Below are positions 24,001-55,200 of a DNA stretch of 64,000 nt, piece after piece; positions within the stretch are counted from its first letter, which is position 1, and each line of letters begins with the position of its first letter. The DNA comes from Octopus bimaculoides. Taxonomy: Eukaryota. A program made the position numbers and the translations under genes. Below the pieces are notes generated by a model. The model saw nothing but the letters and a program-made list of their open reading frames with translations, searched no databases and had not been told where the DNA came from. The stretch covers positions 38,607,510 through 38,671,509 of the forward strand of contig NC_068996.1 in NCBI RefSeq assembly GCF_001194135.2. The letters are read 5' to 3'.

Positions 24001-27000
24001 TTTTGTATATATACTTATAATAGTGTAATTGACAAATCATTGAGCAAGTTATTGTTTTGAATTCAAGTCTTGAATTTGCATTAGTATCTTATGAGATACT
24101 AATATGAATTGCTAAAAGTACACAATATATAAAGTGTTGAGTTTATGGTGAACTTTTATTTAAAATATGGCCAGAAAGATAAGTAAAAGACTACCATTCT
24201 TGATTGCCATTTGAAATCCATAAGTTCAACTTGTTATAGGCAACATTTTGTGACAAGCTTGTCTTCTAATCTTAAAATTTTGCTTACATTTGCTTAATGC
24301 TATAAAAACTGAAGTTAAATATTAGCTTTATAAACACCTATAGTTCATAAGTGATTATAATAATATTACCCTTCTGATTGGAAATATGAAGCATGCCCTT
24401 TATTATTTTCAACTAGATTAGTTCATTTTTTTTTTCTCTTTTTCTCTTGCAGAATGTTGAAGATATGCAAACTAGAGCTAGCATGAAAAGAACAAATGAA
24501 AGAATAAAACTATTCAAAAGAATATTTCAGAAAAGAGAAGGGTGAGTACTTGAGCACTTCACGACTCAACAAAACTGTCATGATTGTAGATCCAATTAAA
24601 TTCAGTACTAGTAGAATATCAGAAGAATGTTTGATACAACTAGCATTTTAACTGTTTTATCTTTTAAATATTTTCCAGAGGTTTTAATCCAGCTGTTGCT
24701 CTTGTTAAAAAGCTTGTGGCTGTTTTAGAATCCATTGAAAAACTCCCTGTCTACAGTTATGATCTTCCTGGGTCTGGTTATGGTTTACAGGTAAGTTATT
24801 TTTTCTTTCTTTTTTTTCTTACTGGGTCTGGAGCAAGGGACAGGCCCTCCTAGACCAGTGGGATTGATACTATTAATGTCCCTCTTTGTAAGTCAACATC
24901 TACAAGAATGATAGGAGTTTAGACAGATCAAGAGGGTTGATGTTCGAGGAAGGAAGAATTGGGTGTCGTGATTAGTGAAAGTGCTAAGTGCAATGAGTCA
25001 TGTGAGAAGGGACAAGTGGTGTGAGAATGTTTGAGTGGAGATGGCATGAACCCAGCCAGTAGTTCAAAGGAGCTGAAGCAATTATAGATGTGGTAGAAAA
25101 GCTAGGAGGAAACAGAACACCTGTCTGTGAGCCATTTGTAAGGGACTTTATCCAATTTGATGAGTGGCTCTATTCTGGATATGCCTAGGGTGTGTGTGTG
25201 TGCAGCACTTACAAACACTTCAGATGTGAGAGCAACATGCCACTGAATATTACCTAAGCTTTTGTAGAGTACTAATTAATAATTGTTAGAGACTGAAATA
25301 TATTTTGGCTCTGAAGAGAAGGGCCAGTCAGTGTCGAAGATGTGCTTTTGCCAGAAGAGATTCTACCCACTAATTGTACTGCATTGATGTTTTCTTGATA
25401 TTGGTAGCATTCATGTTTATGTAGCCAATCAAAATTTAGTTGAATAATGACTTACGATTTATGTCTGCTATTTATCCCTTCTATTTTAGATCCTTACTCG
25501 TCGGCTTAGATTTCGATTAGAGCGGGCTGCTGGTGAAACTGGTTTAATTGATCGCTCAAACCGTACTCTAAAAATGGAACCCCTTACAACAATTTCTGCA
25601 CTTGAAAGATATCTTTTGAAGATGGTAAGAATATATTACAAATTTACAAACATTTCTTTGTAATCAAATGTAAACACAATTTTTTTATGTAAGAAATCAT
25701 CTAATGAAACGTAATTTATAAAGTCATTCCAATTTGAGTTCCTAATTAACTATTATAATGAAGTTGCTTATAAATATTCTTTTGGACTCTTTAGGTTGCC
25801 AAGCAGTGGTATGATTATGAACGATCAACCTTTACTTTTGTTAAAAAATTGAAAGAACCAGGCACATCAATAACATTTACTCATCAGCGGGACTTTGATG
25901 AAAATGGTCTAATTTATTGGATCGGCACTAATGCTAAGTAATTAATTTGTTTTTTATTCAAGTCTGAAAGTAATTTTGATGTTTTAAATCATTACAAAAT
26001 TCAAAAGATTTCTTAAAATATTGTTAGCTATTTTATTTCTAGCCAGAATATATAGGCCAAGGACTTTGCTAGTATATGTGTAAGATGAATTTTAATTTTT
26101 TTTTCTCTTTTTAATTTCAATGATGTATTAAAAAGGATATTTGGAATAACTTAACAAAACATATTTCACATAAATATATTAGAATTTCTATTATAGGTAT
26201 CTTCAGTAAAATTTTAATATTTTCAAAATCACTATCTAAAGTCATTTGGACTAAATAACAGAATTAATGTATTAGAGATGATTATGCACATTTGCTGAAT
26301 TTCAGTTTGCTTGAGTACATATAAAGCATGTGTAAAGGTAGTCCATCAATGTTTAAAAAAAATTATAAAGAGAAATTCAAGTTTGGAGAATTTGAAAGGT
26401 TTGCTGGTATTTCTTAAAGCTTTGGCTTGTTTCCTCTGTGTAGCCCTGAAGCCTAATTGATAGATAGTGCTGCCTACTTGCTAAGTTTTTAAAGAAATGT
26501 TCTAATAAACTCTATGGATATGGGTGGTGTGAACATAGTAGCACAACTCAAAAAATATGTTAGTGTCATAATATTAGGAAAAGAATCTGAAATGTTCATC
26601 CATGCCCCAGTAACTGATTATCTTCTGTAGCCTCCAAATACCCTTTTTGACAAAAATATCCAAATTTCATCTAAGCATGTAGACGTTCAGGAGTTCTCCT
26701 TTCCTCTTTTGTTATATATATATTGAGTAGTGCTTGTTTTTCCAGTTTGCATGTGGAAAATTTTCGAAAATAAATGGCAAATTATTTTGATTTGATGTAA
26801 AAACTGATTGGATCTTGTTTCTTCCAAAAACATTAAAATCTCATTTTGTATTTCATTCTATTTCGTCTGTTGAACAGTCTTCTGGTCTTCTTTACCATCA
26901 AGTGACACTGTTAATTTGTGTTTGCTATCAGAAATAGATATATCCGATTCCAAATTGTGATAATTGTTGCATTTTTCACTTACTGCTGTTGCCTCTTCCT

Positions 27001-30000
27001 TTCAAAATCCCTGCTAAGTTCAGTAATTACAAAAATAGAGATAGTACCTCTGAGGAATAGGCTGGCTGTTGTAGGAACAAGCAAATAAATAATTAAAAAA
27101 GCAAAGTTTAGAGTAGACAAAATTAATGTTCAAATGATGTGGACTATACAAAAAATTTACTTGCTGAAATCTATCACTGGAATAGTAACAAGGCTTCTTA
27201 AAAAAACTGTTCATATAGAAAATAATAAATACTTAGGTTGTTAGATTGATGAGAGACAGGTTAAATAACTTTTTTTGTTTAATCTGATTTTTTTTCACCC
27301 CAGGTAAATAAATTTTATTAATTGTTGAAAACTTTACCAGATCGTTTGAAAATTTATATTGTTTACATTTATTAGGTGTGATCTCTGTAAAATATGCTAA
27401 GCCTGCTATCTAAAGGAAATCTTGTTTTAATATAGAACTGCTTATGAATGGGTGAATCCAGCCCAGTATGGATTAGTGTGTGTAACATCGTCTGAAGGAA
27501 GAAATCTTCCTTATGGAAAACTGGAGGACATACTAAGCAGGGACTCTTCTGCTATCAACTGCCATACAAACGATGATAAGTAAATATTCTTTTATTCTTT
27601 TACTTGTTTCAGTCATTTGACTGTAACCATTCTGGTGCATTGCCTTGAAAAGTTTTTGTTGAAGAAATCGACCGTAGGACTTATTCTTTGTAAGCCTAGT
27701 ACTTATTTTATCGGTCTCTTTTGCCGAACTGCTAAGTTACGAGGATATAAACACACCAACATTGGTTGGACATGCACACACATACATATATCTGATGTGC
27801 TTCTTTCAGTTTCCACCCACCAAATCCACTCTAGTCTTTGCTCAGCCTAAGATTATAGAAGACACTTGTGCAAAGTGCCACACAGTGAAACAATCTGGAA
27901 CCATGTGGTTGGGAAGCAAGCTTCTTACCACACAGCTATTTGAAATTTTTTTTAAACTTTGTCCGTAATGTAACTTTATAAAATTGTTAGTGCGAATTTA
28001 ATTCCTTATAAATTTTAATAAGTGTTTTGTTTTGTCGTTAACTTTGTTAATTATTTGAAGTCACTTCTGTACCTAAAAATTATTTTTTTAAATTTATGTT
28101 GGGTTTCTTGCAGGAAAGCGTCCTTTGCAATAGATCTTGGTGTATGGATTATACCGAATTGTTATACTCTACGGCATGCAAGAGGATATGGAAGGTGAGT
28201 GTCTACAAACTATTGTAAATTTCAGTACAATATATATATCACTGATCTGTCTGATATTAATTCATTTTTGCTTATAACATTAATTAGGCAGTAAATTGGA
28301 AGAAGAATTAGTATTAGATGAAACTCTTCTTTCAAGCTTTTTTTTTTTTCCCCCTCCATCCCAAATTTCTCTGGATTTATGCTTTCTGAATGCAGTATTG
28401 GACCGGTTGAAGCATTAAAACCTCAGATGAGATGCCTTGTGGTATTTGTTTTGGCTCTTTGTATATGGAGTTCAAATTTTGCCATTGTTGGCTTGAATGA
28501 TAAATTTGGTTGGCCACTCAGGTTATCACTGTCTAAATACCTTTAACAGAGTTCACTGTGCTGCAAACATTAAGAACAAGTCGCCAGTTTGAGGATACCT
28601 TCTTGCCTTCATTCTCACCAATCTTAGTTAGGGGTCCTGTGAAGTGTTAGGAGCACTCCTTTCTCCCCTATATAAAGTAATAAAAAAAATTAGGCTTTTT
28701 TTTTTTCCACTGTCATGGAAATTCTTTTTAATTTCTTATATATTTACTCTAAAAAAAATTTTATTTATTGCTTTAAAATTCTTTATTTTAGATCAGCTTT
28801 GAGGAATTGGCAATTTCAAGTTTCAAAGGATGGTCAGAACTGGCTAACTTTGTACAATCATGTTGATGATTGCTCTTTAAATGAACCTGGGTAAGACTAC
28901 TTTCTTAATTTACTTCCTTTTAACAAACTGATTTTTTTCTTTGTAATATATATATATATATATACATATATAAAAAAATTCAAAATTGTGGGTGTAATGT
29001 TTTAATTGATTATTAGAATTTTTTTTTATGTTCTATTATGAAATTGACAGACTAATGTTCATAGAGAATTCAGACCTTTGTTGTACAGGTGATTAGATTG
29101 ATTGAAACCAAATTTTAACTTTAAATTAACTTGCATCAATTTTAACAAAACTAAAATGTGTAAATAGGTTTGAAAAAAGCATCTGCAATATCTGCACATT
29201 TGAGCTAAGACCTCTGTTGTCTATCACGTCAGAAATAAATGTAACTACAAAACTTTGAAAATGAGATGAAGTAAAAGCTGTAGGATATGTAACAATTTCT
29301 GTATGAACATCATTAGTGAGTGATTAATTCTGTTACCATACAGTGTGATGTTACTCTATCACTTAAAAGTAATAATTTTATTTTTAATTTAAAAGATTAA
29401 ACTTTAAATGTGAAAGTTACATTATTGGTATGGGCTAATAAGGTAATAAAACAGATATTGATGATTTTTGGCAAGAAAAAGGTAGAGATATTATATTCAA
29501 AATCGTATTATACAATAATAATTTTCTCTTGTATAATTTTTAGATCTACTGCATCTTGGCCAATTGAATGTCCCACTGAAGAAACTCAGGGCTGGAGATA
29601 CATCAGACTTCAACAAACTGGTAAAAATGCCAGTGGCCAAACACACTATCTTTCACTCTCTGGTTTTGAAATTTATGGTAAAGTGACTGGTGTTTGTGAT
29701 GACATAGGTAAGTACATATGTATCTAGAGAAGCAATTGGCTTAATAAACAAAAAATATATAAACTGCTAAGTTGTTTGAAATTGCAATCAGATAATTTCT
29801 GTTGAATATTAAAGTGTTAGTTTTTTTTTTTTTTTTTTTTTCAAGTATTACTTTTATATTCCTGTTTATCAAGAACTATTGGTTGATTTAATTTCCATTC
29901 CTATTGTTGAATATCCTTTCTTGAATGATATATCAGTGACTTAGGGAAAAGATTTGTTTTAATCTTTATTCACTCTGTTTATTACTTAAGGCAAAGCTGC

Positions 30001-33000
30001 TAGAGAAGCAGAGGCTAATCTAAGACGTCAACGACGCTTTATCAAATGTCAAGTGCTTCGGCAAATACAGCAAGGTGCTCGTGTAGTACGTGGCATGGAC
30101 TGGAAATGGCGAGATCAAGATGGAAATCCTCCTGGTGAAGGATTTGTAACTGGAGAATTGCACAATGGTTAGTATTGTGATATTTTACTCTCATGAAAAA
30201 TGTTAATATAACTACAAAATTACAGTTTCTAACTTCTAAGTTTTTTAATATGGGAGAAGAATGATTAGAACAGGAACTTAGTACAATAGGATGGTATTAA
30301 GACTAAATATAAATTTTTAAATATCTACTTTTTGTTTGGCTTAAAACTTTTTCATCTTCACTTTTCTTTTTGACTAACAGTAATTTTATAAATCTGATGT
30401 GATGATGGTGATATAGTTAAAAATAATTTCCTCTGCTCGTTTGAAGAGTTTGGATATTTTGATACATTTTGCTTTCTTTTTACAAGTAGCTATAAAGTTA
30501 GTTATGTAATTTGTTAATGTCAGTGTGATTATGAACTTATTTTCCATTCCTTTATATTTAAAGCCTTACCTCTGTGTGTGTATTTGTATTAACTAGTTTT
30601 CTGTTTTTTGAAATGTAAAAATTTTGATCCATTTGCATTAATTTAGCAGCGTTATTGTAATTTCTATACTTATTAATGTTTAAATTTTGTTTTTTAATAT
30701 TTAGGCTGGGTAGATGTGACATGGGACTTTGGTGGTTCCAATTCTTACCGAATGGGAGCTGAAGGAAAATTTGATTTACAGCTAGCTCCTTCATATGATC
30801 CTGAAAAGGTGAGAATCCCAAAGTTAGACTCTGCACCACAAACTGTCAAACCAAGAACCGGTTCAACATTCATGGATAAAGTAAAGGTATTTTTTTTTTT
30901 AATAATTAGAATAAAATTATGAAATTGATGCATTCGGTTTATGAGAATTAACCTGTCAGTATGCATTATGCATCATTTACATTTGTAGTCTATTACCATT
31001 GAATACTGAAATTTAGGGGTTTGCTTCAACAAAAGTCGCTCTTCTATGTGTTTTATCACTAACACCTGAGACTTCTTGGAAAAAAATACCCATTCTTTCA
31101 TATTCTAATTAGTGCTAGAATTTTTTAGATTAGGACCGGTCATTATTTGAGTTAGATCTTTCAAACAGTTGATACAAAGGCTTAAGCACAGTCCACAAGT
31201 TATGCAAGTATGGTGGTCTTTTTTTTTTTTTTTTTGTTATGGACATTTTGTCCTAAAATTTAGTACTTAGTTTTTGTTTCTTTTTTAGATAGAAATTGAA
31301 CAAGTTCAGTGATTAAAAATACTCTTCTTTCTGTTCTAATTGTCCAATCCAGGTGAGCATTACCAATCGGAAAAGTAACTCTACTCCCAGCCTCAGTGAA
31401 GTGTCAGAAAATCGAGCATCTGTTGCAAGTACAGAACAGGCTTCATCAGCAGAAAATCTATCATCGGCCTTAAAAAATGTAAGTTACTTGTCTATTGTTT
31501 GCACTCTCTAACATTTGTTAGTTTTTATGTAGCTCTGAAATATAAACTAGGGTTGTATATTTTCTAGATTGGCTTCAGGTTATTTGAATCAAATTTCTGG
31601 TTTCCTTAAAGCCTGTTTTGTTAAACAAACTGAATTCTTTTCCTCCTCATATTTGATTGAACGAATCTTAACAGCCTTTCTAGCAGTGATTATACAATGC
31701 CAGCTTCTTTCAAATTCACCTTTCTAAGGGTTGATAATACTTTTACCAGTGTTGCTTAATCTAATCGTTTCTTATTGGCAAATACCATTTCAAAACTTTT
31801 GCACAATTTTTCTCCATTCATTCTTATGTACAAAATCTGATAAATATCTATGTATGAGCTAAGCTTTTATAAATGTTTTTTTTTTTTGTTCTTTTTTGGT
31901 TCATTTGAATAGTTTTTGTTCAAAATATGCAGCAAATTTGTTCTTGACAGTTCATATGGTGCACTTGAATGTTGTAGGACAACTTGAAATTTACTATAGT
32001 TCTTAATGCATCCATTTATTGTGCTGTGTAAACTTTGTAAACCCACTTTCATCATTTTAACATCTACTTTTTTCTGCTTGCATGGGTCAGATGGAATTTA
32101 TTAAGACAAATTTTTTTATGGCTCTGCTGTCAGTCCTCACTTGTTTCCAAGCAAGACAATATTTCCTACTGATTGGACATATTTATATAGAAGATTGGAA
32201 ACAAATGACATTGCTTGTATGACAGTGACACCTGTTTACGACTATTATGCAATGTCATGGTGAGGCAAGGAAGCATACACAGTGGGCTGCTTTCAATTTC
32301 CATCTACCAAATCCATTCACAAGGCTTGGGCATTTATAGTAGTACACATCTGCCCAAAGTGGCACACTGTGGGACTGAACCTGAAATCGTGTTGGGAAGT
32401 AAACCTAGGCCATACCTTTCTCTACATGCATGTATAGGTGTGGAAGCTTGCTTCCAAACCAAATGGTTCTGGGTTCAGTTCTATTGTGTGGCACCTTGGG
32501 CAAGTCTCTTCTACTATAGCCTCGGGCCGACCAAAGTCTTGTGAGTGAAATTGACAGACGGAAATTGAAAGAACCCTGTCGTGTGTTTTTGTGTAAGATA
32601 ATTTGGCCCCTTTTATCAAACTGCTAAGTTTAGAAGAAATAAACAAACTGATAGAATAAGTACCAAGCTTAAAAATTAAAAAATTAAGTCCTGGAGTTAA
32701 TTTGTTCAGCCAAAACCCTTCAAAGTAGTGTCCCAGTGGGGCCTCAATCCAATGACTGGAACAAGTAAAATACATATATACCAAATGCTGCGATGGTCCT
32801 TACTATATTTGAATATTGTCTTTGGCTTCATAAATAGAAATGATTCCTACCAAGTTTCAACATTATCCTGCTCTGAAAAGCCCATTATTTTGTGGAAATG
32901 CTGAAAATCTTTCTGCTGTGAATTTCATTGCAGACTTTAAAAACTAGTATGTTGAATTATGGATTTAAGACCTACATAGTAACCTTTGCTATGTCGTAAA

Positions 33001-36000
33001 TTTGTGTAAACTTGTTGCCATCTTACATGTAACCTATTCAGTAGATATATAAGTAGGGTAAATTATTTAACTATCTCTCTGTAGATTGGAAAAATTGAAC
33101 AGCCTTAATTAATTTTTGAACTTTATTGGGGTCTCATCAGAGGTGTTGACATCATTTGACTAACTCCTCAGAAGTAATCAGCCAGTCTATTTATATATTC
33201 AATACATCCTCTGGCTTCAAAACTGGAGCAATTAATTTGCATACTTCAAATATTAAACAGTAATATCTGCAGGTTGTCAACAGGGATCTCAGTCCACACT
33301 GTATTAGGGTATGACATGTAATCTATGCAGTACATATATAAACAGAGCAAATTTAACTATTTCTCTGTTGGTTATTCCTATCTATTAAATTACAGTACAT
33401 ACAAAATATGGGTCCCTGTTTTCCCTTGTGGTGGGGTAACAGATGTTTCTACAATTAATTTGATGTCAAATGGTATCTCATGTCTTAGTACAATTCAAAC
33501 TGTATTTCATCCATTATAAATCTATTTACTTTGCAATAGTTCTCTTATCATTTACCTGTTTCGGTCATTGGACTACACCACTTGACTGGTTTTATCAACC
33601 CCAGTAATTATTTTCCCAAAGCCTGGTATTTAGTTTAATTGCTGAGTTACAGAGATGTAAACAAACCAACACCAGCTGTCAAGTAGTATGGGGGGGAAAA
33701 AAGACACACGGACGACATATACATGTAGATGTGACAAGCTTATTTTAGTTTCCGTCTACCAAATACATCCAAGGTACCACATAGTGGGACTGAACCCAGA
33801 ACCATGATGGTTGGGGTAACAGAATTACTCCAGTTGATGTTCCAATCATTTCAGATAAAACTTTTCATAATATTCCTGATTATATGTTAATTTTTTATTC
33901 TTTTTGAAAATTCCAAAAGAATTCCTTTTCAGCTTCAGTTGTTTTATCTCTTTGGTTTTGTAGCTCAATGACCATTCTGTCTTTTTGTTTCATTTTTACT
34001 TTTTATTTATATTGTTTTTTTATTTAACCCTTTAGCATTTAAACCCAGCCATATCCAACCTAAATATTCTGCCTGTTTTCTCTTCAATCTGACCAGATCC
34101 AGCCTCTCATATCTACCCTACAATGTCATTCTAAATCTAAACAATCACATCATCAAAATCTCAAAACTATGAGATAATGCATGATTGATTCAAAAGAATG
34201 TGAATAAATAAGCATTACATTTGACAAAATAACCTGAATGCTAAAGGGTTAAATCAGCTATATCCAGCCCAGATATTCTGCCAGTTTTATTGCCAAACTG
34301 GCCAGATCCAGCCTCTCACACCTACCCTGCAATATCATTCTAAAAATAAACAATCATCTTTGAAATCTCAAAAGCTGTGATAATTCAGGATTAATTTTAT
34401 AAAATGTGAATTTATAATATATTTGACAAAATTTGAATGCTAAAGGGTTACGCCATTTTCTTTTTTCTTTTTTTTTCTTTCTTTTTTTGTACAACCCTGC
34501 TTCATCAAAAAGTACCATTGTTTCATCTCATTTGAATCTTTGGTCATGTATTCCTGATCGTTGTTGCTTTATTTTCTCAATCCCATTTTGAATATCTACA
34601 ATGATTGCAAATTTATGCATAATATCAAATCCTTTTGCAAACTATGCAGTGGCTGAATAGAGGTGAAAATCAAAGTAAAATGCCTCTGGAAGAGGCAACA
34701 GTTTGAAGTGGAGTTTACTGTTTAGTAATGTTTCATAACAACCTGTTCTCTTTTACAGCTCAATCTGACTCTGTATTGCAACCTATGTAGCTTGTCATAG
34801 CCTACTTCTAGTTTCAAATAACTTCTCTCTTTAACATTAAAAAAAAGCCTAACTTTTCTATTTCGTATTGAATCCTTATCATACAGCAGATGTGTTCAGT
34901 TAATTATTAGCAGCATTTTTTCCTTATGTACACTAACTACATCTTTTCATTTTGCTAAAGACATACTTGTACCCCAGAATGTTCTAAATTTTCATGTAAT
35001 TTGCAAATCAATCCTTGTTTTGGATTGCTTTTTGATTTCCCACATAATTTGTTAGTAATAAAAACATAGTTGTAATTAAAAAAAGAAATTTGAAATCTCA
35101 ATTGTCAGCATAGATTTTTTTCATTCTTTTTCTACTTAGGAATGCATTGACGGATTTTTTTTTTTTTATAATTGTGCATGAATGTATTTAGTTTTGATAC
35201 ATTTTGAATTGTACTGTTACAGATTTTGACAATTCACTCTGCTGCTTTTAATCCTGAATGCTTCATTTCTTTATTTGGCTGGTAAAAACTTTCTGGAAAG
35301 TTCTCAAGCTGTGTTGAAATTTAAAACTCAGTGCAATTCAAAGCAGAATTAATATTGTATTAATTTGCTTTTGAAGCAAGCCTTAAAAATTCAAGAGTGT
35401 AAATAGTTTAAAAGAAAATTTTTTTTTTTTTCCAATGAAATCTAGGAAAATATGAATTTGAAAAGTAATTTATCGTTAGGTTACTAGAATAGCAGAAACT
35501 TAGTGCTATGCTAAATGTACAGTAATATTTATCTTTCGGTTTTAGTTCAATTCCTGTTGAGAATAGTCAAATACATACCAGAATGACTACTATTTCTTAC
35601 AAATCTGATTTTCATCTTTGGAATTTTTTTTGAATTTTTAATTCTGACAAAACTTAATTTATGAAAATCTATATATTTGTTCATTAAATTATTTGGTACA
35701 TCAAGATTCAATGTCGAAATAATTTTGATTTCCAAATAATCAAAAGTCTTTGCTTGCTGCAAACAAACATTTTATATAATAATTTGAAATTAAACCACTC
35801 TTATTAGTCAAGTTTTGGTACTGGTTTTGTCAAGATGTTTAAGCCTTATTTTTAAGTCTTCCCTCCTCTTCAGAATGTTGTTTGGCGATATCTTTTAAAC
35901 TACTTATTTAGACATCTAACCTTTTTGGCCTTCAAGGTTGACTATCATCAACAAGACAGAATTCTGTAAAATAGAGGGATCAAATTATATTCCTCTAGAC

Positions 36001-39000
36001 ATTTTTTTGAGGATTTTTCAGTTTTTATGAAATATCTTCCACAATGTTTTCTCTTAAATAAATGAAGCTTTAAAGGCATATTCTGAGATTTCCCAATTGT
36101 TCTCTTTATTGTTACAGTTATTAGAAGGTCTACGAGGTTGTCCAGATCCTTTTTATTCAATGATGCATTTATCTCCACATCCATCATCACACGTCATAAG
36201 GGGCAATACCCTGGAGACTCATCAGTCTGTATCACCCACTCCTACTTGCAGCAACTACTTGGGGGTGAGCATAAAGATTTTGAAAATGTTTCCCTGTGTG
36301 TTTGTGCGTGTGCATGCCTTTGTGTGTGTGTGTGTGTACATGGATAAGTTTTTGTTTTTTTTTTAAATTCAAAAATGTTAATCTTACAACATTTTCAAAA
36401 TTCTCAGTTTAGTATTATGTCCTTATTACTATTTTCCAGAACTTGTTCTGCAACAAAGAAATTGTTTTGTCTTTTAATCCTTTCGTTGCTATATTCCTAT
36501 CTGAAATACACACCTATGTGTTTCAATGAAATTCTAAAATAATCGTGAATTTAGACTTGTTTCATAAAACAACTTGAATTTTTTTTTTTTTTTTTCTTTT
36601 ATTAATCAACATATCAATATGATTTTTAGACACAATTTAACTAAAGGTTCTTAACAAAACCTATTTCATAATTTTTGTCTCAAAGTGGAACTAATTACAG
36701 GTAAATACAGGTAAATTCAACAAAATATTAAATCATTTAAATTTTGTTTAAACATTAGGATGGAAAATGAGTTATTAGCTAATATTCAATGAGTATACAA
36801 CAAAATTTTAATATGAAAGAATTGTGCAAATTACTGGATTATATATCAGTTGAACTTAATGCACATAAGACAAATGGAACATAAACTTCAAGCAGAAAGA
36901 AATATGTGTACCAAGTAAAACAATGAAATACTAGAATTTGTCTTTGAAGAAAACTAGGAAATGAAATACATTTCATCAACTAAATGAAATAAACTCACAT
37001 ACATATATATATACATAAATACATATATTCACAATACAAAGTGATCAAAATTTGCCACACATCTTACAGGTAAATAAAAAAAATTAAAATAGGTAAAGGT
37101 GAAAAAATATAAATCAGTTATACACATTTTAAAATTCTTTTGTATCTGTTGTACTGTTGTCAGAATTGTTTCACTTCAGGAAATAGAAATATTCGATTTG
37201 TAATCACACACATAGTATACATAGTTTGTGTACACACTGTATTAACTTAGATTTTTCTGTCTTTTGAAAATACTTGGAATTTAAACTTGCTGCTTGACAA
37301 CATGAAACTAGAATCCAGTTTGAAAAAATAAATATCCAAAACTTTGCAGTGCTCAGATATCCTGTAAAATAATAAGTGTAACTCAATTGTTTATACAATG
37401 AAATCATGTGTCTTCACAAATGTACTACTGAGATTAGCACTGGAATTCTCATTTAAATACGACTAGCTTATTTTGGCTGTTTTCAATTAGGTTGATATTA
37501 TTCATCAATAAAATTCTCAGTTGGCTACGGCCACCTTGGTATTGAAAGGGTTAAGAAAGATTTGGTTCAAAAAATTCAATCTTGTGTTGAACATGGTCTT
37601 TAACCAAGCAATTTTATAGAAATGAATTAAATTTCTGAAATTATATTCATTTGGAAAAATGCTCTTGAATTTTTATCATTGGGCTTGTTTGTATATACAG
37701 ATTAAATTTCTGTGCAATTTCATTCATTTGAAAATACTCTTGAATTTTTGTCATTAGGCATGTATATACAAATTATGAAAAATTAAATTTTACTTTTATA
37801 TAAAAATATATTTGTAAAACTCGATGATTTACTCAAATTTTATGATGAATAATTTGTATAACACATTCCATTTCCTTTTCAAAAATTGCAGGCACTAAGA
37901 CTTTTATTTAACAAGAAATTGAATTTTGTAACACAATAAGCTATGAATTCAAACACTATTTATTCATCAGGACAAATGTGTTTTAGGTTTTAATTTTCAA
38001 TAATTTTCATTTGAAAGTGTTTAACTAGTTTTGAGTTTTCAGTTAAAATATTTTACTTTCTTCTGGCCTAATGTTTGTTTCCTGTAAGAATGTTTGTTTT
38101 CAATGTACAAGATTCAAGAAATTATGCATAATATTACAAATAACATTCAGTGAAAAATTAAGACACTTTTAGTTCAGGCTTTTGGATATTCCACTTAATA
38201 ATTAGATTTTATAAATAACTTAAAAGCTGCACTCTATGCAGACTTTTAAGTTATCTCATGCAGAGGACTAATTGGGCTTGGGGCATAAAGTTAAAGAGAG
38301 CTAAATAGCGTGATTATAATGTGTCTATAATGACTATATGCCCCAGTAGTATTTGGTCAGAGGTTACGGGTGGATGAAAATTAATTCTGTAAGGTAATCA
38401 TTCTATTGCTCCAGTCCCAAGTTGAATCCCAACTGTTGGCCAATTTGTCCCAAAGTTCTTATCTCAGAATAAAATTAATGAAGCAAATGTCATTTATCTC
38501 CCCCTTGATCTCTGTCATCTGATAAATGCCAACCAAGATGATGTGAATCAGCAAAAAAAGATACATTTCATATTGCTGAGTAGAATTTTAAGAGTAAACA
38601 ACTTATGTTGAACTTTTACAATTCGTGTAATAAAATGTTTGGCATTTGGGGAAAATGTATTTTTAAGAATTGATATTCATTTGTAAGTACATATAAATGG
38701 ATTTAAGCTGGAGAATTACCTCAAGTTTGTGAGAATTAATGTTTTATATTATAAAGTGTCAGTTTAAAATATTTTCTCAGATTTTAAAAACATAAATATT
38801 AAGTTTTCAATTTAAAGAAAGCTATCAGTATATAACAGTTTGACTGACTAGTAATAATTAAACATCAGTTATTTTACATATTTCTGAAGTTAACTTTTGA
38901 ATGAGAAAAATGTACTGGACTTCCTAATCATTTCTGAAAAGTGCATCCTGATGCAGCAATTGTGTCATTTGTTAATACACTAAGAAACTATTTTTCTTTC

Positions 39001-42000
39001 CAGAAGTATCGGCTATTTTTTTCTATTAATTAACCATTGTTATTACATTTAATATCTGGTTACACTATACATACACACAAAATCTTACATGTTATTTAAA
39101 ACACCAAAAACATAGTTACTGTGAATGTCACTGCCAACAATATACTTAGTAAAAAGAATAGATTTTGAGATCTGGTTAACTCATACTAGCTTAGTTTCAA
39201 ATAGATTTTTCTTATATACTCTTTATAATATTTAACATTTACAACACTTAAAAGTAGATTTAACCTCACTCATTAACAATTTTGGTTCCTCTCTCTCTCT
39301 CTTTCCTCTTGTAATTATTTGTTGTTGTTTTTTCTCCTCACATGCACAACAAACGTTACTAAACTTTTTTTTTTTTAAATATTTCATGATTATTTTTTCA
39401 GCTGTAATTGAACTTACTTAATTCATGCAAAATTTCTTGAATAATTATGTTCAAGAAATATTAAATTAACCTAAATTCAGTTTTGGGAGATGAAATTTAC
39501 AGATTTAACACCATTAAGCATGCTAAAGATGTTATTGTTTATTATTACCATGTATATTCATATATTTCCCCATGCAGGTTTGAAATTAATAATTCCCTTC
39601 AATTATCTTCTATTTCCAATAAGTTTTTCCATTTTACTTGCACCATTTTTTAAAATTAATTTCATCTTGATTATCATGAAGTAAATCTCTAATCAAACCT
39701 CTAATGAACCAAATTTTTATTACTTTTTGTAGCTAACTTGCAAATGATCCTTTATTTGCATCCAGAGTTGTTAAATGCCTATTCTTGCATGTTTGTCATT
39801 CTGTAAGTTTTTTTTTTTTTTTTTAGAACAGACAGAAATAGAATCTTTATAACAATTTTGTGAATACAAATATTAATTTTATAACTTGGGTTTTTCAAAT
39901 GAAATTACTTACAATTATGCAAGCTCTTTTTGCAAAACAATACTTTCATATGTTATGTGCATTGAAATTTGTAATTAGATGTTTTTGATGAACATTGGTT
40001 TGTTGTTAAACCTGTTTACTAGAAAATTAATGGAATAAGATCATTTGCCGTAGCTGCTCTTCCTCATCATTTATAAATACTAGTTAGTGCAAGTGTCTTA
40101 ATAGTTTTTCAGTGTTTTAAATGTAGCAGCTAAATTGTCTTGGTTGATTTTTATTACATACAATTTGGGGCCATATTAACCCTTTTGAAATAGTGTTTTG
40201 GTATGTGTAGCCAAAAAGACTTTTTTTTTTTTTCCTGTTGAGATTGAAATTGATGGGTGCTTGTAGAAAACAAAGAATAAAGTGCCTAATACTATTTTAT
40301 TAGTAAAACTATATATACGACATAGTTTCATATTATATCAACTGACAGACGATCCCTGATAAGCTATTACACTTCAAAACGTTTATTTCATCAGACCAAT
40401 GCGTTGGCCTCAAAGTCCTTTCAGCTTGTATCACTTGGACCAATCAATCAGCCCAGGTGTCGCAAGAGGGTTGAGTCTTACAATTCAAATGGTCATAGGT
40501 TAGTCCACATTACTCTATAAGGAGAATGGGACCGCTTTCTCTGGTGTATATATTCCTCTCTGGACAGTGTGCCAGTCTGACAGAATTACTCATTTTTACC
40601 AGCTGAATGGACTGGAGCAACGTGAAATAAAGTGTCTTGCTCAAGAAACCACAATCTTAATGATCATGAGTTCAACACCCTAACCACTAAGCCATACACC
40701 TCCATAAGGTCATAGCTTGAACACTAATTACAATTGAAGCTGATGTACTTGAATATCCTACTTCACTTATCTACGATTTATTAGCAACTTGATTTACTAC
40801 CACTATAATAGATAGTGAAAATTAAAGCTTGCTTGCTTGTGCAACAGGTAGCACAGATATTATATAATAATTTTGTTCTATTCATTGAAGCTTTGTAATC
40901 AAAACAAAAATAGCTGTTATCATCACATTTAAATGGTTCAAAATTTTAAAGTTTGATATCCTATAATATAAAAGTATTCTGTAATTGTAATATTAGCAAA
41001 ATGTTTCATTTTAGAATAATATCAAACATTTAAAATATGAGACCACTTTTGCATGTATTGATATAAATGTCTATGTTATTTCTGTTTGGTTTTGTAACTT
41101 TTATAACTATTTCCTACTTGTCCTTAGATAAAATTGTAATTAAGCTGGTCATTGATCGCAAAGCATTGTTCATCAATATATTTGAAGTATGTTGCAGGTA
41201 GCAGCAACCTAAAGCAATGTAATTTTGAGGTGGTTGATACTTATTTTGATTTTTATCTTTCTATTCTGGCAATAAAAATAACATACTTATTATTGAAGAA
41301 TTGACAAATGTTTCACCAAGAATGTGGCAATCTAATGCAACTTTTTTGTCTCCAGTAATGCAACAAGCAAATTTTTATTTGAGAAAGAAAATTCAGTTTT
41401 TTTTTTTTTTCAAATTAAGAATCGACATGTTTTTTCCACCTTTAGTATTCAGTTTATATAAAGGGGGGGGGGGATTGATTCACATAAAATATTAAACTTT
41501 AATTCTAAATTTTAATAAAGAGACTTATTGTGCTTACTCATGTACAAATTTCTCTTGTCATACAGAATTGTTTGTACATACTTTGCTTTTTTTCTTTTCT
41601 TTAAAGGCTGCGCAACAGTTAGCTGATAGTGTTGTGAATTTGGCAAGCAATGATGCTATTGTCATGGTTACAGTTGATCCTAGTGAAGAAGGTTCAGCAA
41701 ATGGCAACAATGCACAAGAATCTACTCCTGTTGTTCGTTGGGAGCCGTGTCCTTCAGATTATCTTGAAGGCGCTACAGGTGGTGGTGATAATGTAGTTGG
41801 GTTAGCAACATCTAAAGTTGAAAAACGTAGGGGTAAGCTGCTTTAATTTTCTGTAGCATTTTTCACTTTTATCTTCAACATTTTATGGATTAATACAAAT
41901 CGGTGGAATTCTGCTTCAAGTACGCCATAGAACACCTCATAATTTTGGAAAAAAATTTGGGGAATTTTCATAAAATTTTTGCAAATTTGTGTTCTAGACA

Positions 42001-45000
42001 AGAATTCATATGATTATGCAACCCCTACCTTCCCCCAAAAGATTTTTATCTCATGACCATCTGATATTCTTTTCATTTGTTTGTTAGTCTGACATGTTGA
42101 TGTTTTTCAATCTTTCTCCCCATAAACAGATTTAATGATCCATTGCTGGGATTTAAGCCAAAGATTCAGACTGTCCATACGTTAAACTGATGTAAAAAAA
42201 AAAAATTGAAAAATCAGAAATTTTTTTTTCATAGTCATGTGAATTCCTGTGTGTAGAATACGAATTCAAAATAATTTTCTGAAAATTCCAAAATATATAT
42301 TAAAAAAAAAAAAGTTATGAGGGGTTTTAAATGGTGTGCTTAAAGCAGAATTCCACCCACAAATCTATTACAGATTACATGAAGCAAAAATTAAATGTTT
42401 AATTGATTTCTTTGGGGAAAATGTTTTTTTACAGTTTTATAGATTACATTAAACTATTCTCATTAAATATTACATATCCTGACTTTGTTTTCTAAGCTTA
42501 TGCACTTCTAAATTGAAAATGATTATCAGCTGTTGGTTGAATCTTGGATACTTCATCAGTAATGTTTTTATTTTTTTTTTAATTTGAAATATTTTATATA
42601 AGGTACAGAAGTTGGAATTGATGGAAGCCACAACATAGTTCCAATGAGAGAGCAAAAGCGACTCTTTCGAACTGAGGCCAGGAAGTTACATGAAACACAA
42701 AATTCTCGTAGCTCGCCAACTAATCCTATGAGTGTAAGTGTTCCAAATCTTCCCACTTCTTTGGAACCTGGTGCTAACTCTATGGAATCTTTTGCTGTTG
42801 TTGTAAGAAGAAATCTTACAAATGAAACCAGTAACATGGCTAGTTCTACAGCCAACAATGGTGGTTTAGTCCGCCTAGCTGCTTTTGCCAACACACCTAG
42901 TAAGTACCCATTATTTGTATTTCTCAGTTTATTTTTAGGTTTCATAATTGTTGTAAAATCAAATTCATTAATCATTTATAAAAAGTTATATATTAAAGCG
43001 AATGCTTTTGAATCTACAAGTGCAGATTGGCATAACTCAGAAAATATAAGGGTTATATTGTTTCAAGGAAATGTTATCATTAGTAGATTTTAAAATATTT
43101 GAGCTTTATTTTTAAATAGGAATATGGAATTTAAATTTTTATTTGATATTTGTGCTTTTTTTTCCTTTTTTTTTTGTTACTGATTTGGCATTTATTACTG
43201 CCGTTTCTTATAAGTTTTTATATAAATTTTTCTCAATTCATTTGGCTGACAACTGAAATCCCTACTTGTAGTGGCTTACTGGTTAGATACTATTCAGATT
43301 TGTATACAATCAAGTGTAAGATATTTAATATTCAATTCTCCTAATAGCAAGTGTTTTTAATGTAGTTCTAACATTTCATTTATACTGTTTATTCCTTTTT
43401 TTTTTTTTTTTGCTTTAGGTAACCTACTAAGTGCTCAAAGCTTTCCTAACCTAACTAGTACACCATCCACTACATCTAGCACTTTGACAACAGCTCAAAC
43501 AATGACCAACATGACTTTAAGCCAGGCACTTACTCGCAGTTTACCGTCAACTTCAAGTGAAAGTGATAATGAATTTTTGGAAAGCTGCCAAGCAAATGCC
43601 TTGTTAGCAGATCTTGATGATGAATTGATGCCTGATATAGAAAATGATGGTGATGAAAATGATGATGAAAATGAAGATGATGATTTTGATGATGTTGTGA
43701 TGGTGAGCAGCTACTTTCAAGCATATTGAATTCTTTTAACTATCCACCTAGATCAATCACGTTTTGTATGTGAGGGATATAGTTGAATAAATAAATGGCT
43801 TTTATTAATATGCTGCTATTCATCCAATTGAATGAAATAAAAGTTACTTGAAAATAGCAGGATTTTGATACGATACTGACAATTATTAGACAGGAGGCAT
43901 AAAACACTATTATAATCATAAAACATAGTTTGTAAGCTTTCAGTTCCTTTTCAATTTACTAAATACAGTAATACCTCACCTTATGAGAACCCACTTTTCA
44001 AGACCCCAGGTTTACGAGTTTTGTTTTTCAAGCACAATATTCAAATTTTGAACGAAGTACAAAAGTTTCTACTACCATAACAAATGCTTCTGTGTGTTAC
44101 CATGAAATTTATAGAAAGCAAAAAAAAGTTTCTTTTAAGCAAACAACTCTAGACTTGTGTTTTAATAAAGAAATCTACAAGTCTGTCTATGAGTGCTTGT
44201 GAATCTGTGATCATGTACAAGTAAAGGTGTGCATGAGTCTAGTTTGAGTGAAAGTGATTCAGAAAATGATTATAATAATTTTTTTTATCATAACTGTTCT
44301 TGACATTCTTTACATTCTACTGTTGCTTTATTTCCATATATTTACAAGTATTATAAATTTTATGGGGAAAATATTTTTCTGGGAATAAATTATGATTTAT
44401 GACATTGCTACTTTGAGAAGTTATTGCACTGCTTTACAAGTGGCCTCTGGGAGCAAATTAACTTGTATATCAAGGCATTACTGTACTTAACAGATTTCTC
44501 ATATAAGTCATCTCATACTTTATCCCTTTCTGAGCTAAATGTAATTTATGAAACAACTGAGTATATTTTGATTTTTACTTATTTAATTCTATTTATTTTT
44601 ACAGGAAGATGATGATATTGAATGTAGAGGTGAAAAACGAAGAATGTGGGATGATGAATTTGTCTTGAAACGGCAATTTTCAGCTCTTATACCAGCCTTT
44701 GATCCACGTCCTGGTCGTACTAATGTAAATCAAACACAAGATTTTGAAATACCTGCACCTGGTATGTACTGTTGAAATAAAATTGTTCTAATCAAAAATT
44801 ATGAAAATAACTTTACAAGCAAATATTTTACAAGAACAAACTCTAAATATATCATGGTTTCTGATATGTGTGTGTGTGTGTGTATGTATGTGAATCTTTT
44901 TACTTGTTTCAGTCATTGGACTGTGGTCATGCTGGAGCACCTTGAAGGGTTTAGCTGACCAGTACTTATTTTTTTATGCTAGGTATTTATTCTTTTGGTC

Positions 45001-46218
45001 TATTTTTCCAAATCACTAAGCTATAATCATCAAGCAATGTAGGAAACCTACACTGGGCTTCTTTCAGTTTCTATTTACCAAATCCTCTCTTCAGGTTTTT
45101 GTTGGCCTAGAGCTATAAAAGAAGACACATACCTAAGGTATAACGCCTGTGTATAGGTGCAGGTGTGGTGTTTGGTTTAGTCTCACTGTACAGTACCTTG
45201 GGTAAGTGTATTTTGTGGCCTTGGTTCAACCAGATTGGATTTGATAGATGGAAACAATGTTCATTGTCTCTGTGTGTATAAGTATGTTTGTGTGTGCCCA
45301 TATCTTAACATCATGTGATGGTTGTTAATGAGCATCAAGTTCATACAAACGATGTGGTTCATTCCTAAGGGAAACAGGTGAGGGGTGAAGACAAACTGCT
45401 GACTTTGTACCAAAACTTGAAATTAATATTTATGGAATTGTTTCATACAGTATATTGATTTTAAATTTTGGCTCATGGCCAGCAATTTCGGTGGGAGTGG
45501 GTAAGTCAATTACATCAAACCTCAGTGTTCAACTGGTACTGACCCTGAAAGGAGAGAAAAGGCAAGGTTAGCCGTGGCAGAATTTGGACAAAATGCTGTT
45601 CAGCATTTTTGCCCAGCATGCTAATTAGTCTACCTGCTTGCCACCTTGTTTTGTACAGTAAATTGAATTAAATATAACAATTAATTTACCCTTATTCTCT
45701 AACTATGAGGTGACTTGTGATAGAAAAAAATTTATAATACCTTGATAACTAGAAACCTCTTGCCAGAAAAGAAAAAAAAAAACGTGCTGACATGAGGTAT
45801 CTTATGTTTGTACACTTCCTTACAAAATTATATTTTCTATTGATTTATATATTTACGTGCCATGAAAATTTCTTGTGATGTCTTATGACCAATCAAAAAT
45901 GCTGCTTGTGATTGATATTCATTATTTTTAATTAGGTTCTGAAGATAGCTCAATACTTGAATTAAGCAATCAAGTCCCTCAGCCACGTCTTGCTCTCTTT
46001 CTAAAAGCACCAGCCACTACAGGGGTACGCAACTTTTCTTAATACATTTTTCATAATTCTTTTGATGTTTTTCTATCCTTATGAAAAATGCCTTCAAATG
46101 CATATATGCATAATACTTAGAAAATGGTAATAATTCCAACTGACGGTCAGCATGAAAATAAATTTTAGAAGAAACCTCAATTCAAAAATATTTTTTTCAA
46201 ACTTGGTCTAAATAGTTT

Positions 46219-49200: not shown

Positions 49201-52200
49201 ATTTATAAAAGTTTTAATACAGGTGAGAATTGCTTAATATTATCTAATATTTGATATCTCTTTTTTTTTCTTCTCTAAGGACCCACTAGTGTTAGCTAGC
49301 AATGCATTACCTGATTGGTGCGAACAGCTAACAAAATGGTGCCCCATGCTCTTCCCATTTGAAACCAAGCAACTGTATTTCAGCTGCACAGCTTTTGGAA
49401 CGTCAAGGTAAGAATTACTGCAAGAATATGAAAACTCTGGGGTTATGAAAATAACATTAATAAAAGTTCTTGTAGGTGTTATCCACCAACAATGTTATGT
49501 AAACTTCTATTACACTTCCCCACTTTTTTTTTTCTGCTATGAGCTATGTTTATTTCATTCTGTGCATCAAATTTCTGAATTTTCATTTTATGTACTACAG
49601 AGCTATTGTATGGTTACAAAATAAGAGAGATGCTGTTCTTGAAAGAAATAGAGGGCCAACACCAAGAAGGGATGATACACATGAATACCGAATAGGTCGA
49701 CTAAAGCATGAGAGAGTCAAGGTTCCTCGTGGAGACCAGTTACTAGAATGGGCCCTTCAGGTTATGCGTTTCCATGCTCGCAGAAAATCCATTTTAGAAG
49801 TAAGTTATTAGTTTTGGATTTTTTTTCTAATCTCAGTTTATTATTTGCATTGAATGAAAACTAACATCACTTCTTTAAACTATTGTAGTGAGCTATTGAG
49901 ATATTGGTTACACAGTGCTAGTCATAGAATATGAACTGTCAAAATTTTCTTGTAGGCTGATTACCTTACCAACTTAGTTGCATCTCTTATTGGTTGTTTT
50001 TATATGCATTATCTTTATACAATGCTTGCACTTTTGCAGATTGAATTCATTGGGGAGGAAGGCACAGGACTTGGACCTACACTTGAATTCTATGCTCTTA
50101 TTGCTGCAGAATTGCAAAGAAAATCTCTTGGGCTTTGGTTGTGTGATGATGATATTGTTGACACTACTGAACGTGAGGTGAATAAATTATTTTTCTAGTT
50201 AATATATGATTAAAAACAAAATCTTTTACACTTAGAAAGAAAAAAAAGAAAATTCAGAAAAATGCTAATGTGTTATGCTTTTTAATATTCATTACTTTCA
50301 AATATTCAACTTTTCAAATCTAAAGACTATGTAAATATTTACTTCTTTTATTAATATTTTTTTAGGTTGATATTGGTCATGGTGTGAAAGCTCCTGGATA
50401 TTATGTACAGCGTGCTGGTGGACTTTTTCCTGCACCAATTCCACAAGACAGTTCAGATTTAGAGAGAATAGAATCTCTGTTCTATTTTCTTGGAACACTC
50501 CTTGCAAAATGTATTCAAGATAATCGGCTAATTGATTTACCATTGTCTAAGCCATTTTTAAAAATGATGTGTTATGGTGGATCAGTTAGACAGACCAGTA
50601 AACACTGTTCATACATGCCTTCACAGCGTAATAGTAGCCCTTGTGAATCATTTTGGACAAATGAAGATCTAATTTCAAGTAGTGAATATGTTGATAAAGA
50701 ACTTATTCTTGATCCACCTAAAACATATCAAAATACTGGGCCACCTTGGTATGCTGGTATTTTAAAAGAAGAAGATTTTGCCCTTGTTGATCCCCACCGT
50801 GCATATTTTCTCAGCCAACTGAAAGAATTGAGTACCCGCAAACAAAATATATTAAAGAAACCAATATCAAAAGGCCAGAAAAATTTACTCATGCAAGACC
50901 TCAGAATTCCTCCCCCTTCTCCAGATTCAGAAAATGGTGTTCGCCTAGAAGATCTTGGGTAATTATTATCACTATTATTATTATTATTTGTCAAGGTTGA
51001 ATTTTGCCTTTCACTCATGTTGTCAATCAAATAAAGTTGAGCACTGGAATCAATGTAATCCACTAGATCCCACCCCAAAATTTCAGGCCTTGTGCCTATA
51101 GTAGCAAGGGTTGTTGTTGAATTAATGTTGGCTAAGTTTTTCCTTAAAAAAAAAAGCCTAATTAAAAATGGTGGTAAATACTTTTTCATTAGACAGCTGC
51201 ATTTCATTTCATTTGGATCTTTCAAGTTATATACTGGTACATCATATTAATGAATTAGCGTGTTGAAATTAGATAATTAGAAGCCTAAATGCCGTTTTCT
51301 TTGATGATTGCTACATTGATAACAATAGTAATAAAATAAGAATTAAGATTTGTTGACAAACTTATATCAAGACATAGCTACTAAAAATGCAGTATAAAGG
51401 CCAGTATTTCTACCACTATTCTAAAACATTTGATTTGATGTTTGCTCTTTTTCTTCCTCTCTAACTTTTTTTTTTTTTTTTTTTTTTTTGCCAGCTTGAC
51501 GTTCCAATTCAATCCTTCATCCAGAGTTTATGGCTATACCTCAATTAATCTCCGCCCTGGAGGAGATGAACAGGTCGGTTGTAAACTGTATAAGCACCAA
51601 TTTAAGACTGAAAGGAGAAACAGGCTCAATGAGTGGGCTCAAACCATTCATTGCCCAACGATTGATTAAAAACATAATTAATATTCCATAAACAGGCTTA
51701 TTTCTCTTCTGGCATAAACTGATGCTTAAAATGTCTAATATAATTTATAAATGTTTTTGAATACTTCTTTTTTTAAAGCCTAAACAATCCAAGTTATGAA
51801 AAAATAATTAATATGCATAGGCACCAGCATGGTATGTGGTAATAAGCTTGCTTCCCAATTTCATGGTTCTGGGTTCAGTTCCACTGCTTGATACCTTGGG
51901 CAAGTATCTTCTACTATAGCCCTGGGCCAACCAAAGACTTAAGAGTGGATTTGGTAGGCAGAAACTGAAAGAAGCCAGTCATATACATATGTGTATATTT
52001 GTGTCTGTGCTTGTCCCTCCAGCATCACTTGATAACCGATGTTGGTGTATTTACATCCCCATAACTTATCAGTTTGGCAAAGGAGCCTGATAGAATAAAT
52101 ACTAGGCTTACTTAGTCTTGTGGTCGATTTCTTTGACTAAAATACCCTTAAAGGCGGTGCTCCAGCATGGCTGCAGTCAAATGACTGAATCAAATAAAAG

Positions 52201-55200
52201 AATACAGGTCAATGGTGCTCTTACCTGGTATTTCAATATTTCAGGATTGTCTGTGGAGAAAAGGTGTTGATAGCTGATGTCTCCCAGCTATTCTTTTACT
52301 TGTTTCAATCATTTGACTGCAGCCATGCTGGAGCACTGCCTTTACTCAAACAAATCAACCCAGGACTTATTCTTTGTAAGCCTGGTACTTATTCTATCAA
52401 TCTCTTTTGCAGAACTAAATTACAGGGACATAAACATACCAACATCAGTTGTCAAGTGATGGTGGGGGGGACAAACAAACTTATACAATGGGCTTCTTTC
52501 AGTTTCCGTCTACCAAATCCACTCACAAGGCTTTGGTTGACCCAAGGCTATAGTAGTAGACATTTGCCCAAGGTGCCACACAGTGGGACTGAACCTGGAA
52601 CCATGTGGTTGAGAAGCAAGCTTTTTACCACACCTGCGCCAATACCTTTTCTCTAGATTTCCAGAAGGAGTCCTAACCCTGAAATATTGAAATATCAGGA
52701 TTAATTTCTTTTTATGTATAACTTACATTGTTTTAGCTTTATAAAAAGAAATATTTAAAACATACATATACAAAGCTTCATGAAAACAATACTACTCTGT
52801 TAATATAATTTATTTTAAAATATTAGAAGCTAATTCATAATTTAGTTCAAATACCTAAGAATTACTGACTGCTATATTTTTAATGTTTCATTGGTACTAA
52901 ATGCCAATTTTATTGATCTTGAATTTGAACTTGTAACATATGTAACTAAACTAAATTCAGAGTTTACTTTCCATTCAATGTCTTATTTTATTTTAAATCC
53001 TTATTGTTTTTCATTCTAAATTTAAAAGACTGGAATTTTTGTAGTTGAATTATTTTTCTTTACTAAAGTAGCACGATTGACATCATTCATCAACAGTTGG
53101 GATCAAAGCTAGATATTGATCTGCTTACCATGAGCTTATTTATTATCTGGAGCCTCTTTTTAAGTTTAAATTTTTTTTTCCTTTTTTATTTTTCAGGAAG
53201 TCACATTAGACAATGTCGAAGAATATGTGACCCTTGTAACTGATTTTTGTTTCAACACAGGAATTCAGCGACAGATGGAAGCCTTTAAAAGTAATTTGAC
53301 ATATTCTAGTTTTTGTTCTTTTTTTTGTTCTTTTTTTTCTTTTTTTTACACCATACTAACATGGATTAGGCAAGACTTCTGTGGACTGTTGCTAGCACTT
53401 ATTTGTTTCCCTTACCTTTTAAATCATGAACTGCTCAGCATCTAGACATGTTTTAACAGTAGATATAATAAATGACAAAACACAGAAGTTTCTGTCCAAT
53501 TTCCATCTATCAGTTTCATATGCAAGGCATTGGTCAACCTTCAGTCTTATAAAAATATATATGAGAGGCATTGGTATCTAGAAGACCCGAGGTGGCAGGT
53601 AAGGCTATGTAAGTGCTACGAGAGGACCATAGTTACACCCTCAGTTCAATAATAATACAAGTGAGGAATCTAATGCATGTCTTATGTGGGCATGTATATG
53701 TTAAATAAAATGAGACAACAAAACCAAGGCTGTGTGGAATTTATAGGACATTTATAAAGAGAAAGGTAGTTTTGCAGCTGTATCTGGGATATTAGGGATA
53801 TCCCTTCATCAGAGACAATATGAGAGAGTTAACTAGAGGGAAATAGAGTTCAATATAAAGCGTTATATTGAACTCTACTATTTTTAAATGTCCTATAAAT
53901 TCCACATAGCGTTTGGTTTTGTTGTCTCGTTTTATTTAATACATACATAGATATATATACACACACACGCACACACACATATACACGCACACATATATAT
54001 ATATATATAACAGAGAATGAACCCAATTGAAACAAACTTCATAATTCCACACAGCCTTGGTTTTGTCGTCTCGTTTCATTTAATATATATATATAACAAA
54101 GAGAATGAACCCAGTTGAAGCAAACTTCATAACTACAGCAAAATCTATACCGCAAACAAAAATAACTTTTTAATAGAATTGGTGTTGATTAGTGTCCTAG
54201 TTTTTTTTATTCCATTACGATATGCATCAGGGCTGCTACACATGGACAAACCTGAATTAGATAGCACACCTGTTGTTTATCTAAGCATATAAATGGCATA
54301 ATTTATGATTAGTCTGGTACAGTTGGTCCATCTCCTGAACCAAGATAGAAGATTGGCTCTCAACCTGCTAGAAATAGATGCAAGGTTTCCTTCAAAACAC
54401 ATCCTATCTTTATAACAGGGGAAGAACATCTAGGGGACTGTGGTACTAGATATCCATAAAAAAAAATTACTCTCCCATTTTATCTACATAAAACAGTTCT
54501 ATTGTTGCAACATCATTTGTCTGATCTGGTACTATATTGATGTGGTCTGGATGAGTGTAGCATAATGAGTACATGTAAGAATTGGCTTCCAAATGTTTGA
54601 TCAAATATCTTTGTCATAGGTTATTTTGTTGGAGCTAGTTGGTGCTCTGCAGTTATTTAATCCACACGTTTTTTTAAACCTAACAACTATTCTATTTTAG
54701 ATGGATTTGATCTGGTTTTCTCTATGGAAAAATTATTATTCAACCCTATGGAGTTGTCATCCTTACTTTGTGGTGACCAAGCACCAACATGGACAAAAGA
54801 AGATATTCTAAATTACACAGAGCCAAAACTAGGCTATACAAAAGATAGGTCAGTTATTTTTTTCATATTTTTAATTTTTTGCTTTTCCAATTTTTTTACA
54901 TTTTAATTTAAACTATTGCATGTTTTAAATACAATTACTTCCAATAGCGAATCTTTTTTCTTTTTCTTTTTTGTAGCCCTGGATTCCAAAGATTTATTAA
55001 TGTCTTATTAATGCTGACGTCTGATGAAAGAAAATCATTCCTGCAGTTCACTACCGGTTGTTCTTCTTTGCCACCTGGTGGCTTGGCTAACCTGCATCCA
55101 AGGTTGACTGTTGTTCGTAAAGTAGATGGAAATGATAATAGTTATCCATCTGTGAATACGTGTGTCCATTATTTGAAATTACCAGAGTATTCTACAGAAG

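Follow-up and report, generated by a model that had tools for sequence, protein, structure and literature searches.

The 64-kb window, by which we mean the whole stretch of DNA that was analysed, holds most of a HECTD1 gene on its + strand. The host gene had been predicted to be HECTD1, and this identity is borne out by a MIB/HERC2 domain (~29990-30886) that matches PDB 2dk3/3dkm, the solved MIB/HERC2 domain of human HECTD1, with E=5e-37, together with a HECT C-terminus, the domains being arranged in the HECTD1 order. Orthologue fragments align with the + strand HECTD1 exons one exon after another, and the final coding open frame has the terminus ...REKGFHLN, followed by a stop, at 55256. A run of Ns at ~19757-19800 (+), which appears as XXXX in the translation, lies inside an exon-carrying open frame and is an assembly gap adjoining coding sequence. 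A strong donor-like site at 30808 (+; AAAAG/gtgaga, score 6.9, with the slash marking the splice junction here and below) is located inside the exon ending at 30886, where it might either serve as an alternative 5' splice site or be a decoy. The two constitutive exons that concern us here are separated by an intron of 10,128 nt with a GC content of 0.30, and the upstream one is covered by the orthologue fragments P0004, P0007, P0036 and P0037 in tblastn comparisons. Coordinates of these exons and of the features discussed below are collected in Table 1.

Table 1. Features of the HECTD1 locus, in window coordinates
Feature	Position	Strand	Details
Real HECTD1 exon	24453-24541	+	89 nt, GC 0.28, needed for reading frame
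Upstream constitutive HECTD1 exon	31353..31478	+	Phase-0 end (...ALKN), donor AAT/gtaagt
Putative branch-point region	36081..36099	+	CTGAG A at 36086 (-32); CCAAT As at 36095/36096 (-23/-22)
Polypyrimidine tract and acceptor ttctctttattgttacag	36100..36117	+	Generic PWM 6.2, above ~21/32 real acceptors
Exon-like segment	36118..36264	+	147 nt, 49 stop-free codons, phase 0-0, 44% GC
Donor GGG/gtgagc	36265..36270	+	Generic PWM 7.0; only two scored real donors higher
Degenerate TG microsatellite (family D4)	36295..36337	+	Contains TGCATG 36311-36316
Downstream constitutive HECTD1 exon	41607..41832	+	Phase-0 start (AAQQ...), acceptor score 10.4
SINE-like copies, examples	1700-2110, 27590-27935, 32250-32780, 33540-33815, 44890-45140, 51835-52204 (-), 52286-52635		

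The exon-like segment in the middle of this intron had originally been predicted to be an unannotated cassette exon. Its length and mid-intron position, its stop-free translation, its phase (read from both flanking exons), the sequence of its acceptor and that of its donor, which follows an exon end in GGG, were all found as they had been described. Since both flanking exons are in phase 0 and the segment measures a multiple of three, its inclusion and its skipping would both keep the reading frame. It thus has the frame of a cassette exon, with no stop in the phase of the flanking exons, and it also has the splice sites of one, as both of its scores fall within or above the range of the gene's own sites. 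A branch point is possible in the region upstream of the polypyrimidine tract, where both candidate positions show a partial match to yUnAy.

The predicted enrichment in GC is likewise present (0.44, as compared with 0.27 and 0.26 over 500 nt on either side). GC content is an unreliable exon marker in HECTD1, however, because the real exon at 24453-24541 is as AT-rich as the introns, and its weight as evidence for an exon is further reduced by two other GC-rich islands in the same intron, at 38223-38378 and 40313-40751 (+). Both islands are unique in the window, neither carries an exon-like splice pair of the strength seen at 36118-36264, and the open frames of 40313-40751 gave no Pfam match.

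Splice sites were scored with a generic position weight matrix calibrated on 33 recognisable HECTD1 exons. The candidate acceptor outscores roughly two in three of the gene's real acceptors, which speaks for an exon. Within the 10.1-kb intron the candidate donor is the sole donor scoring at least 7, four acceptors including that of the candidate reach 6.2 or more, and 36118-36264 is the sole pair of such strength. Only two equally strong pairs exist across the gene span, the other being the real exon 24453-24541, and no pair of this strength occurs on the minus strand of the window; both observations favour an exon. As a null model, the intron was shuffled 400 times with dinucleotides kept within 300-nt blocks. 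Pairs of candidate strength arose at a rate of 0.037 per shuffled intron, and none of the 400 shuffles produced such a pair with the correct frame and no stop, which again counts for an exon, while thresholds set at the median of the real sites yielded an in-frame open pair in 8 of the 400. The combination of features is therefore unlikely to arise by chance in a single window (on the order of 0.3% up to a few per cent), and the splice scores and shuffles together uphold the predicted exon-likeness as exceeding chance at the level of the window. Genome-wide, some chance pseudoexons of comparable quality are expected. Elsewhere in the gene, a 33-nt exon-like element at 11173-11205 (+), in the intron upstream of the exon at ~12018, combines an acceptor of 4.4 with a very strong donor of 9.7 (CAG/gtgagg) and is open in all three frames; these features would suit either a micro-exon or a decoy.

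The coding signal of the segment was assessed with a codon log-likelihood trained on 1,666 real-exon codons versus intron trinucleotides. Frame 0 scored 0.002 bits per codon, whereas real exons, under leave-one-out, had a median of 0.25 and extremes of -0.06 and 0.53, and only two of the 33 scored lower than the candidate, a result that weighs against an exon. On the other side, the score lies above 89% of stop-free intronic windows (80% when GC-matched) and above those of the other two frames of the segment (-0.38 for +1 and -0.22 for +2). Frame +2 is likewise open, over 86 codons (36087-36344), and the frame-0 open reading frame spans 36058-36363 and so overruns both splice sites; each of these properties counts against an exon. 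In real exons, frame +2 carries stops at ~0.10 per codon, and a further open frame of any kind is seen in just 6% of their 147-nt windows. An open frame is by itself unremarkable here, since frames of at least 49 codons are open in ~60 intronic regions across the gene span. Together with the extra open frame, the codon usage of the segment speaks against long-term coding selection, and the segment looks like non-coding DNA that chanced to be open. Such an appearance fits either a young exon or no exon at all, and does not fit an old, selected one.

The nearest database relatives of the flanking exons come from other molluscs, with at most 68% identity. In ten orthologue fragments from other animals the flanking exons are joined directly without any insertion, which counts against an exon, and ...STEQASSA(E/D)NL...K runs straight onto (T)AE.VAESVL.LAS inside a conserved block. 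The original prediction had placed the insertion in the linker; these ten fragments speak against a loose linker, as an insertion at the junction would split the conserved block. In a genomic contig of one relative, L001 (10001-11011), there is no intron at the host position of the candidate, and the frame continues uninterrupted over 336 residues; in that of another, L002 (~950-1620), an intron occupies the same position in phase 0, with a length of ~0.67 kb compared with 10.1 kb here. An 11-residue similarity between the L002 intron and the candidate peptide (SSHTIRW-TLE) was dismissed as chance (shuffle test, P=0.64). The absence of the intron in L001 and its small size in L002 imply that it lengthened along the lineage to which the window belongs, so any exon within it would be a lineage-specific gain. 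The predicted lineage restriction accordingly holds if the candidate is used, given that the ten fragments lack the insertion, that the intron is absent from L001 and that the L002 intron contains no homologous segment.

Searches for relatives of the segment itself returned nothing that would identify it. The candidate peptide had no match in a word-indexed protein search with its flanks attached, and no real homologue emerged when 1.84 billion representative proteins were searched exhaustively with HMMER, which weighs against an exon; the four HMMER matches obtained were rejected as translated tandem repeats or a repeat protein from bacteria. The frame +2 peptide had no protein match either, and Pfam searches in four frames of the segment gave nothing over the cut-off. 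ORF look-ups for the same or a sister species gave no match, and two codon-degenerate scans of metagenome contigs, one with the cassette and one with the constitutive exon as control, were uninformative, as the control went unmatched along with the cassette. A literature search on HECTD1 isoforms and cephalopod cassette exons retrieved nothing relevant. Several other identities were eliminated. The peptide is unlike every other exon, which rules out exon duplication, and the junction reads cag/TTATTA, which rules out a recursive splice site or RS exon. A repeat within the window (no second copy of the segment), a known RNA family (no Rfam match at E<=1 over the whole intron), a stable RNA structure (folding z=+1.15) and an antisense gene (the reverse strand of the segment has no long open frame) were also discarded, and these last four exclusions add to the case for an exon.

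We tentatively favour, at just under an even chance, the reading of 36118-36264 as a genuinely spliced, young, lineage-specific HECTD1 cassette exon. It would have been born from intronic DNA while the intron grew from <1 kb to 10 kb. Its donor, GGG/GUGAGC, is predicted to base-pair with U1 snRNA, the 18-nt pyrimidine tract and CAG to recruit U2AF, and the 147-nt spacing to permit exon definition. In part of the transcripts, 31478 would then be spliced to 36118, and 36264 to 41607, adding 49 residues (LLEGLRGC...SNYLG) between the peptides of the flanking exons without shifting the frame. The strength of the splice signals, the phase, the open frame and the lack of the segment in distant orthologues are observed, whereas its use by the spliceosome, with the frequency and place of that use, is inferred, and nothing indicates that the inserted peptide would be a selected functional module. 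A chance pseudoexon, in which an acceptor and a donor of good quality happen to meet a C/T-rich stretch that is poor in stops and which the spliceosome ignores or uses at noise level, is also a serious possibility, somewhat below even. Pseudoexons are reportedly far more numerous than real exons in long introns, and the candidate resembles them in its location in a long intron, in having consensus-quality sites spaced as in an exon and in its weak coding signature. In codon usage it cannot be told apart from the highest-scoring non-coding open windows; two of its three frames are open and the frame-0 frame extends past both sites, which suggests composition rather than selection. The abundance of long intronic open frames, the several strong donor-like or acceptor-like sites in the gene span that have no mapped exon boundary, and the lack of a homologue and of an insertion in orthologues also agree with a pseudoexon. 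Unlike typical intronic pseudoexons, however, the candidate surpasses most genuine sites of the gene at both of its ends and is open in the right phase, a full combination that was absent from the shuffles at its own strength and rare even at the median real-site strength. The only other pair of equal strength in the gene is a real exon, and the minus strand offers none. A constitutive HECTD1 exon of the source species, missed by an exon-skipping gene model, would account for the strong splice sites and the kept frame, yet we regard it as highly improbable: codon usage and the out-of-frame stop pattern look unlike those of the other exons, and in every orthologue fragment the two flanking exons adjoin, their junction falling in a conserved motif.

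The original prediction went further and invoked a neural or muscle exon whose inclusion would be promoted by Rbfox at a downstream UGCAUG and by CELF-type proteins at UG repeats. This is a sub-case of the young cassette exon and, in our estimate, an unlikely one. A downstream UGCAUG is known to favour exon inclusion, and the candidate resembles Rbfox-activated neuronal and muscle cassette exons in having one less than 50 nt from its donor; the TGCATG is indeed present where it had been described, 47 nt past the exon end and within a UG-rich tract, as is a further copy at 35175. Against such regulation, there is one copy of the motif near the candidate, the copy at 35175 being irrelevant at 940 nt upstream. 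TGCATG occurs 35 times on the + strand in 64 kb (~1 per 1.8 kb), so that the chance of meeting it within 100-300 nt of a given point is 5-15%. The supposed UG-repeat tract proved to be UG-rich as stated, but it is only a degenerate TG microsatellite of a type (D4) found widely in the window, which readily yields such hexamers. A lone motif at near-chance density inside a decayed microsatellite sets the candidate apart from Rbfox-activated exons and leaves Rbfox regulation unsupported; Rbfox or CELF control of the candidate is a lead that the motifs suggest rather than a finding. Still more doubtful is a tissue-regulated, lineage-specific HECTD1 isoform in which the new 49-residue Ser/Pro/His/Cys-containing insert acts as a switch for an interaction of the giant E3 ligase in nerve or muscle and breaks up the conserved block (...AESVxxLAS) downstream of the MIB/HERC2 domain. 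What stands of the earlier interpretation is thus an exon-like, frame-keeping segment that is lineage-specific if used; the Rbfox argument and the placement in a linker are unsupported. A different origin of the signals was considered in a SINE-like family with an internal TA/TG microsatellite, which has at least 15 copies in the window in both orientations. The antisense end of the family (CTTTTACTTGTTTCAG/TCATTTGACTG) forms a very strong acceptor-like site followed by the internal microsatellite, and it reaches a score of 11.5 in the copy at 13889, which makes the family well suited to supply cryptic 3' splice sites. The exon-like signals could accordingly represent an old, decayed antisense copy, in a manner resembling Alu exonization. 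The number of copies in the window and the acceptor at 13889 agree with such an origin, as do the alignability of 36094-36126 with the antisense SINE end and a similar overall layout (head, ~170 nt, G-run, microsatellite). A profile built from eight window copies (nhmmer), however, covers 36094-36126 only, a non-significant match of 33 nt at E=3.7, whereas every recognisable copy is matched by the same profile at E=1e-53 to E=1e-6, and blastn yielded no more than 22 matching nt in SINE copies and no significant hit. No significant similarity links the segment to the transposable-element families present in the window, and we consider a SINE-like origin decidedly improbable.

Lineage-specific cassette exons that arise by exonization of intronic sequence are well known, primate Alu exons being an example. 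Like them, the candidate lies deep in a lineage-expanded intron, lacks a counterpart in other animals, has a non-coding-looking composition, and is symmetrical in length (a multiple of three), so that inclusion is tolerated. It differs from primate Alu exons in lacking a demonstrable transposable-element origin, and from young exonized elements in general, whose splice sites are usually weak, in the strength of its own. Spliced exon or pseudoexon, it is an ordinary kind of feature. If the favoured reading of a young cassette exon is true, the locus would offer a clean case of exon birth within an intron enlarged more than ten-fold in one lineage, together with a conserved E3 ligase that has a species-restricted isoform, the insert of which lies inside a conserved motif; this would be useful for annotation and for the study of how new exons originate, while being unsurprising in kind. 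If the segment is unused, it would serve as a high-scoring pseudoexon on which splice-prediction tools could be tried in AT-rich, long-intron genomes. Downstream of HECTD1, an open frame on the minus strand at 60034-60330 (..LLQDNVRQHIAQ..EVLPHYPYSSDLVPS) had no Pfam match at E<0.01 and presumably resembles the C-terminus of a mariner-type transposase.
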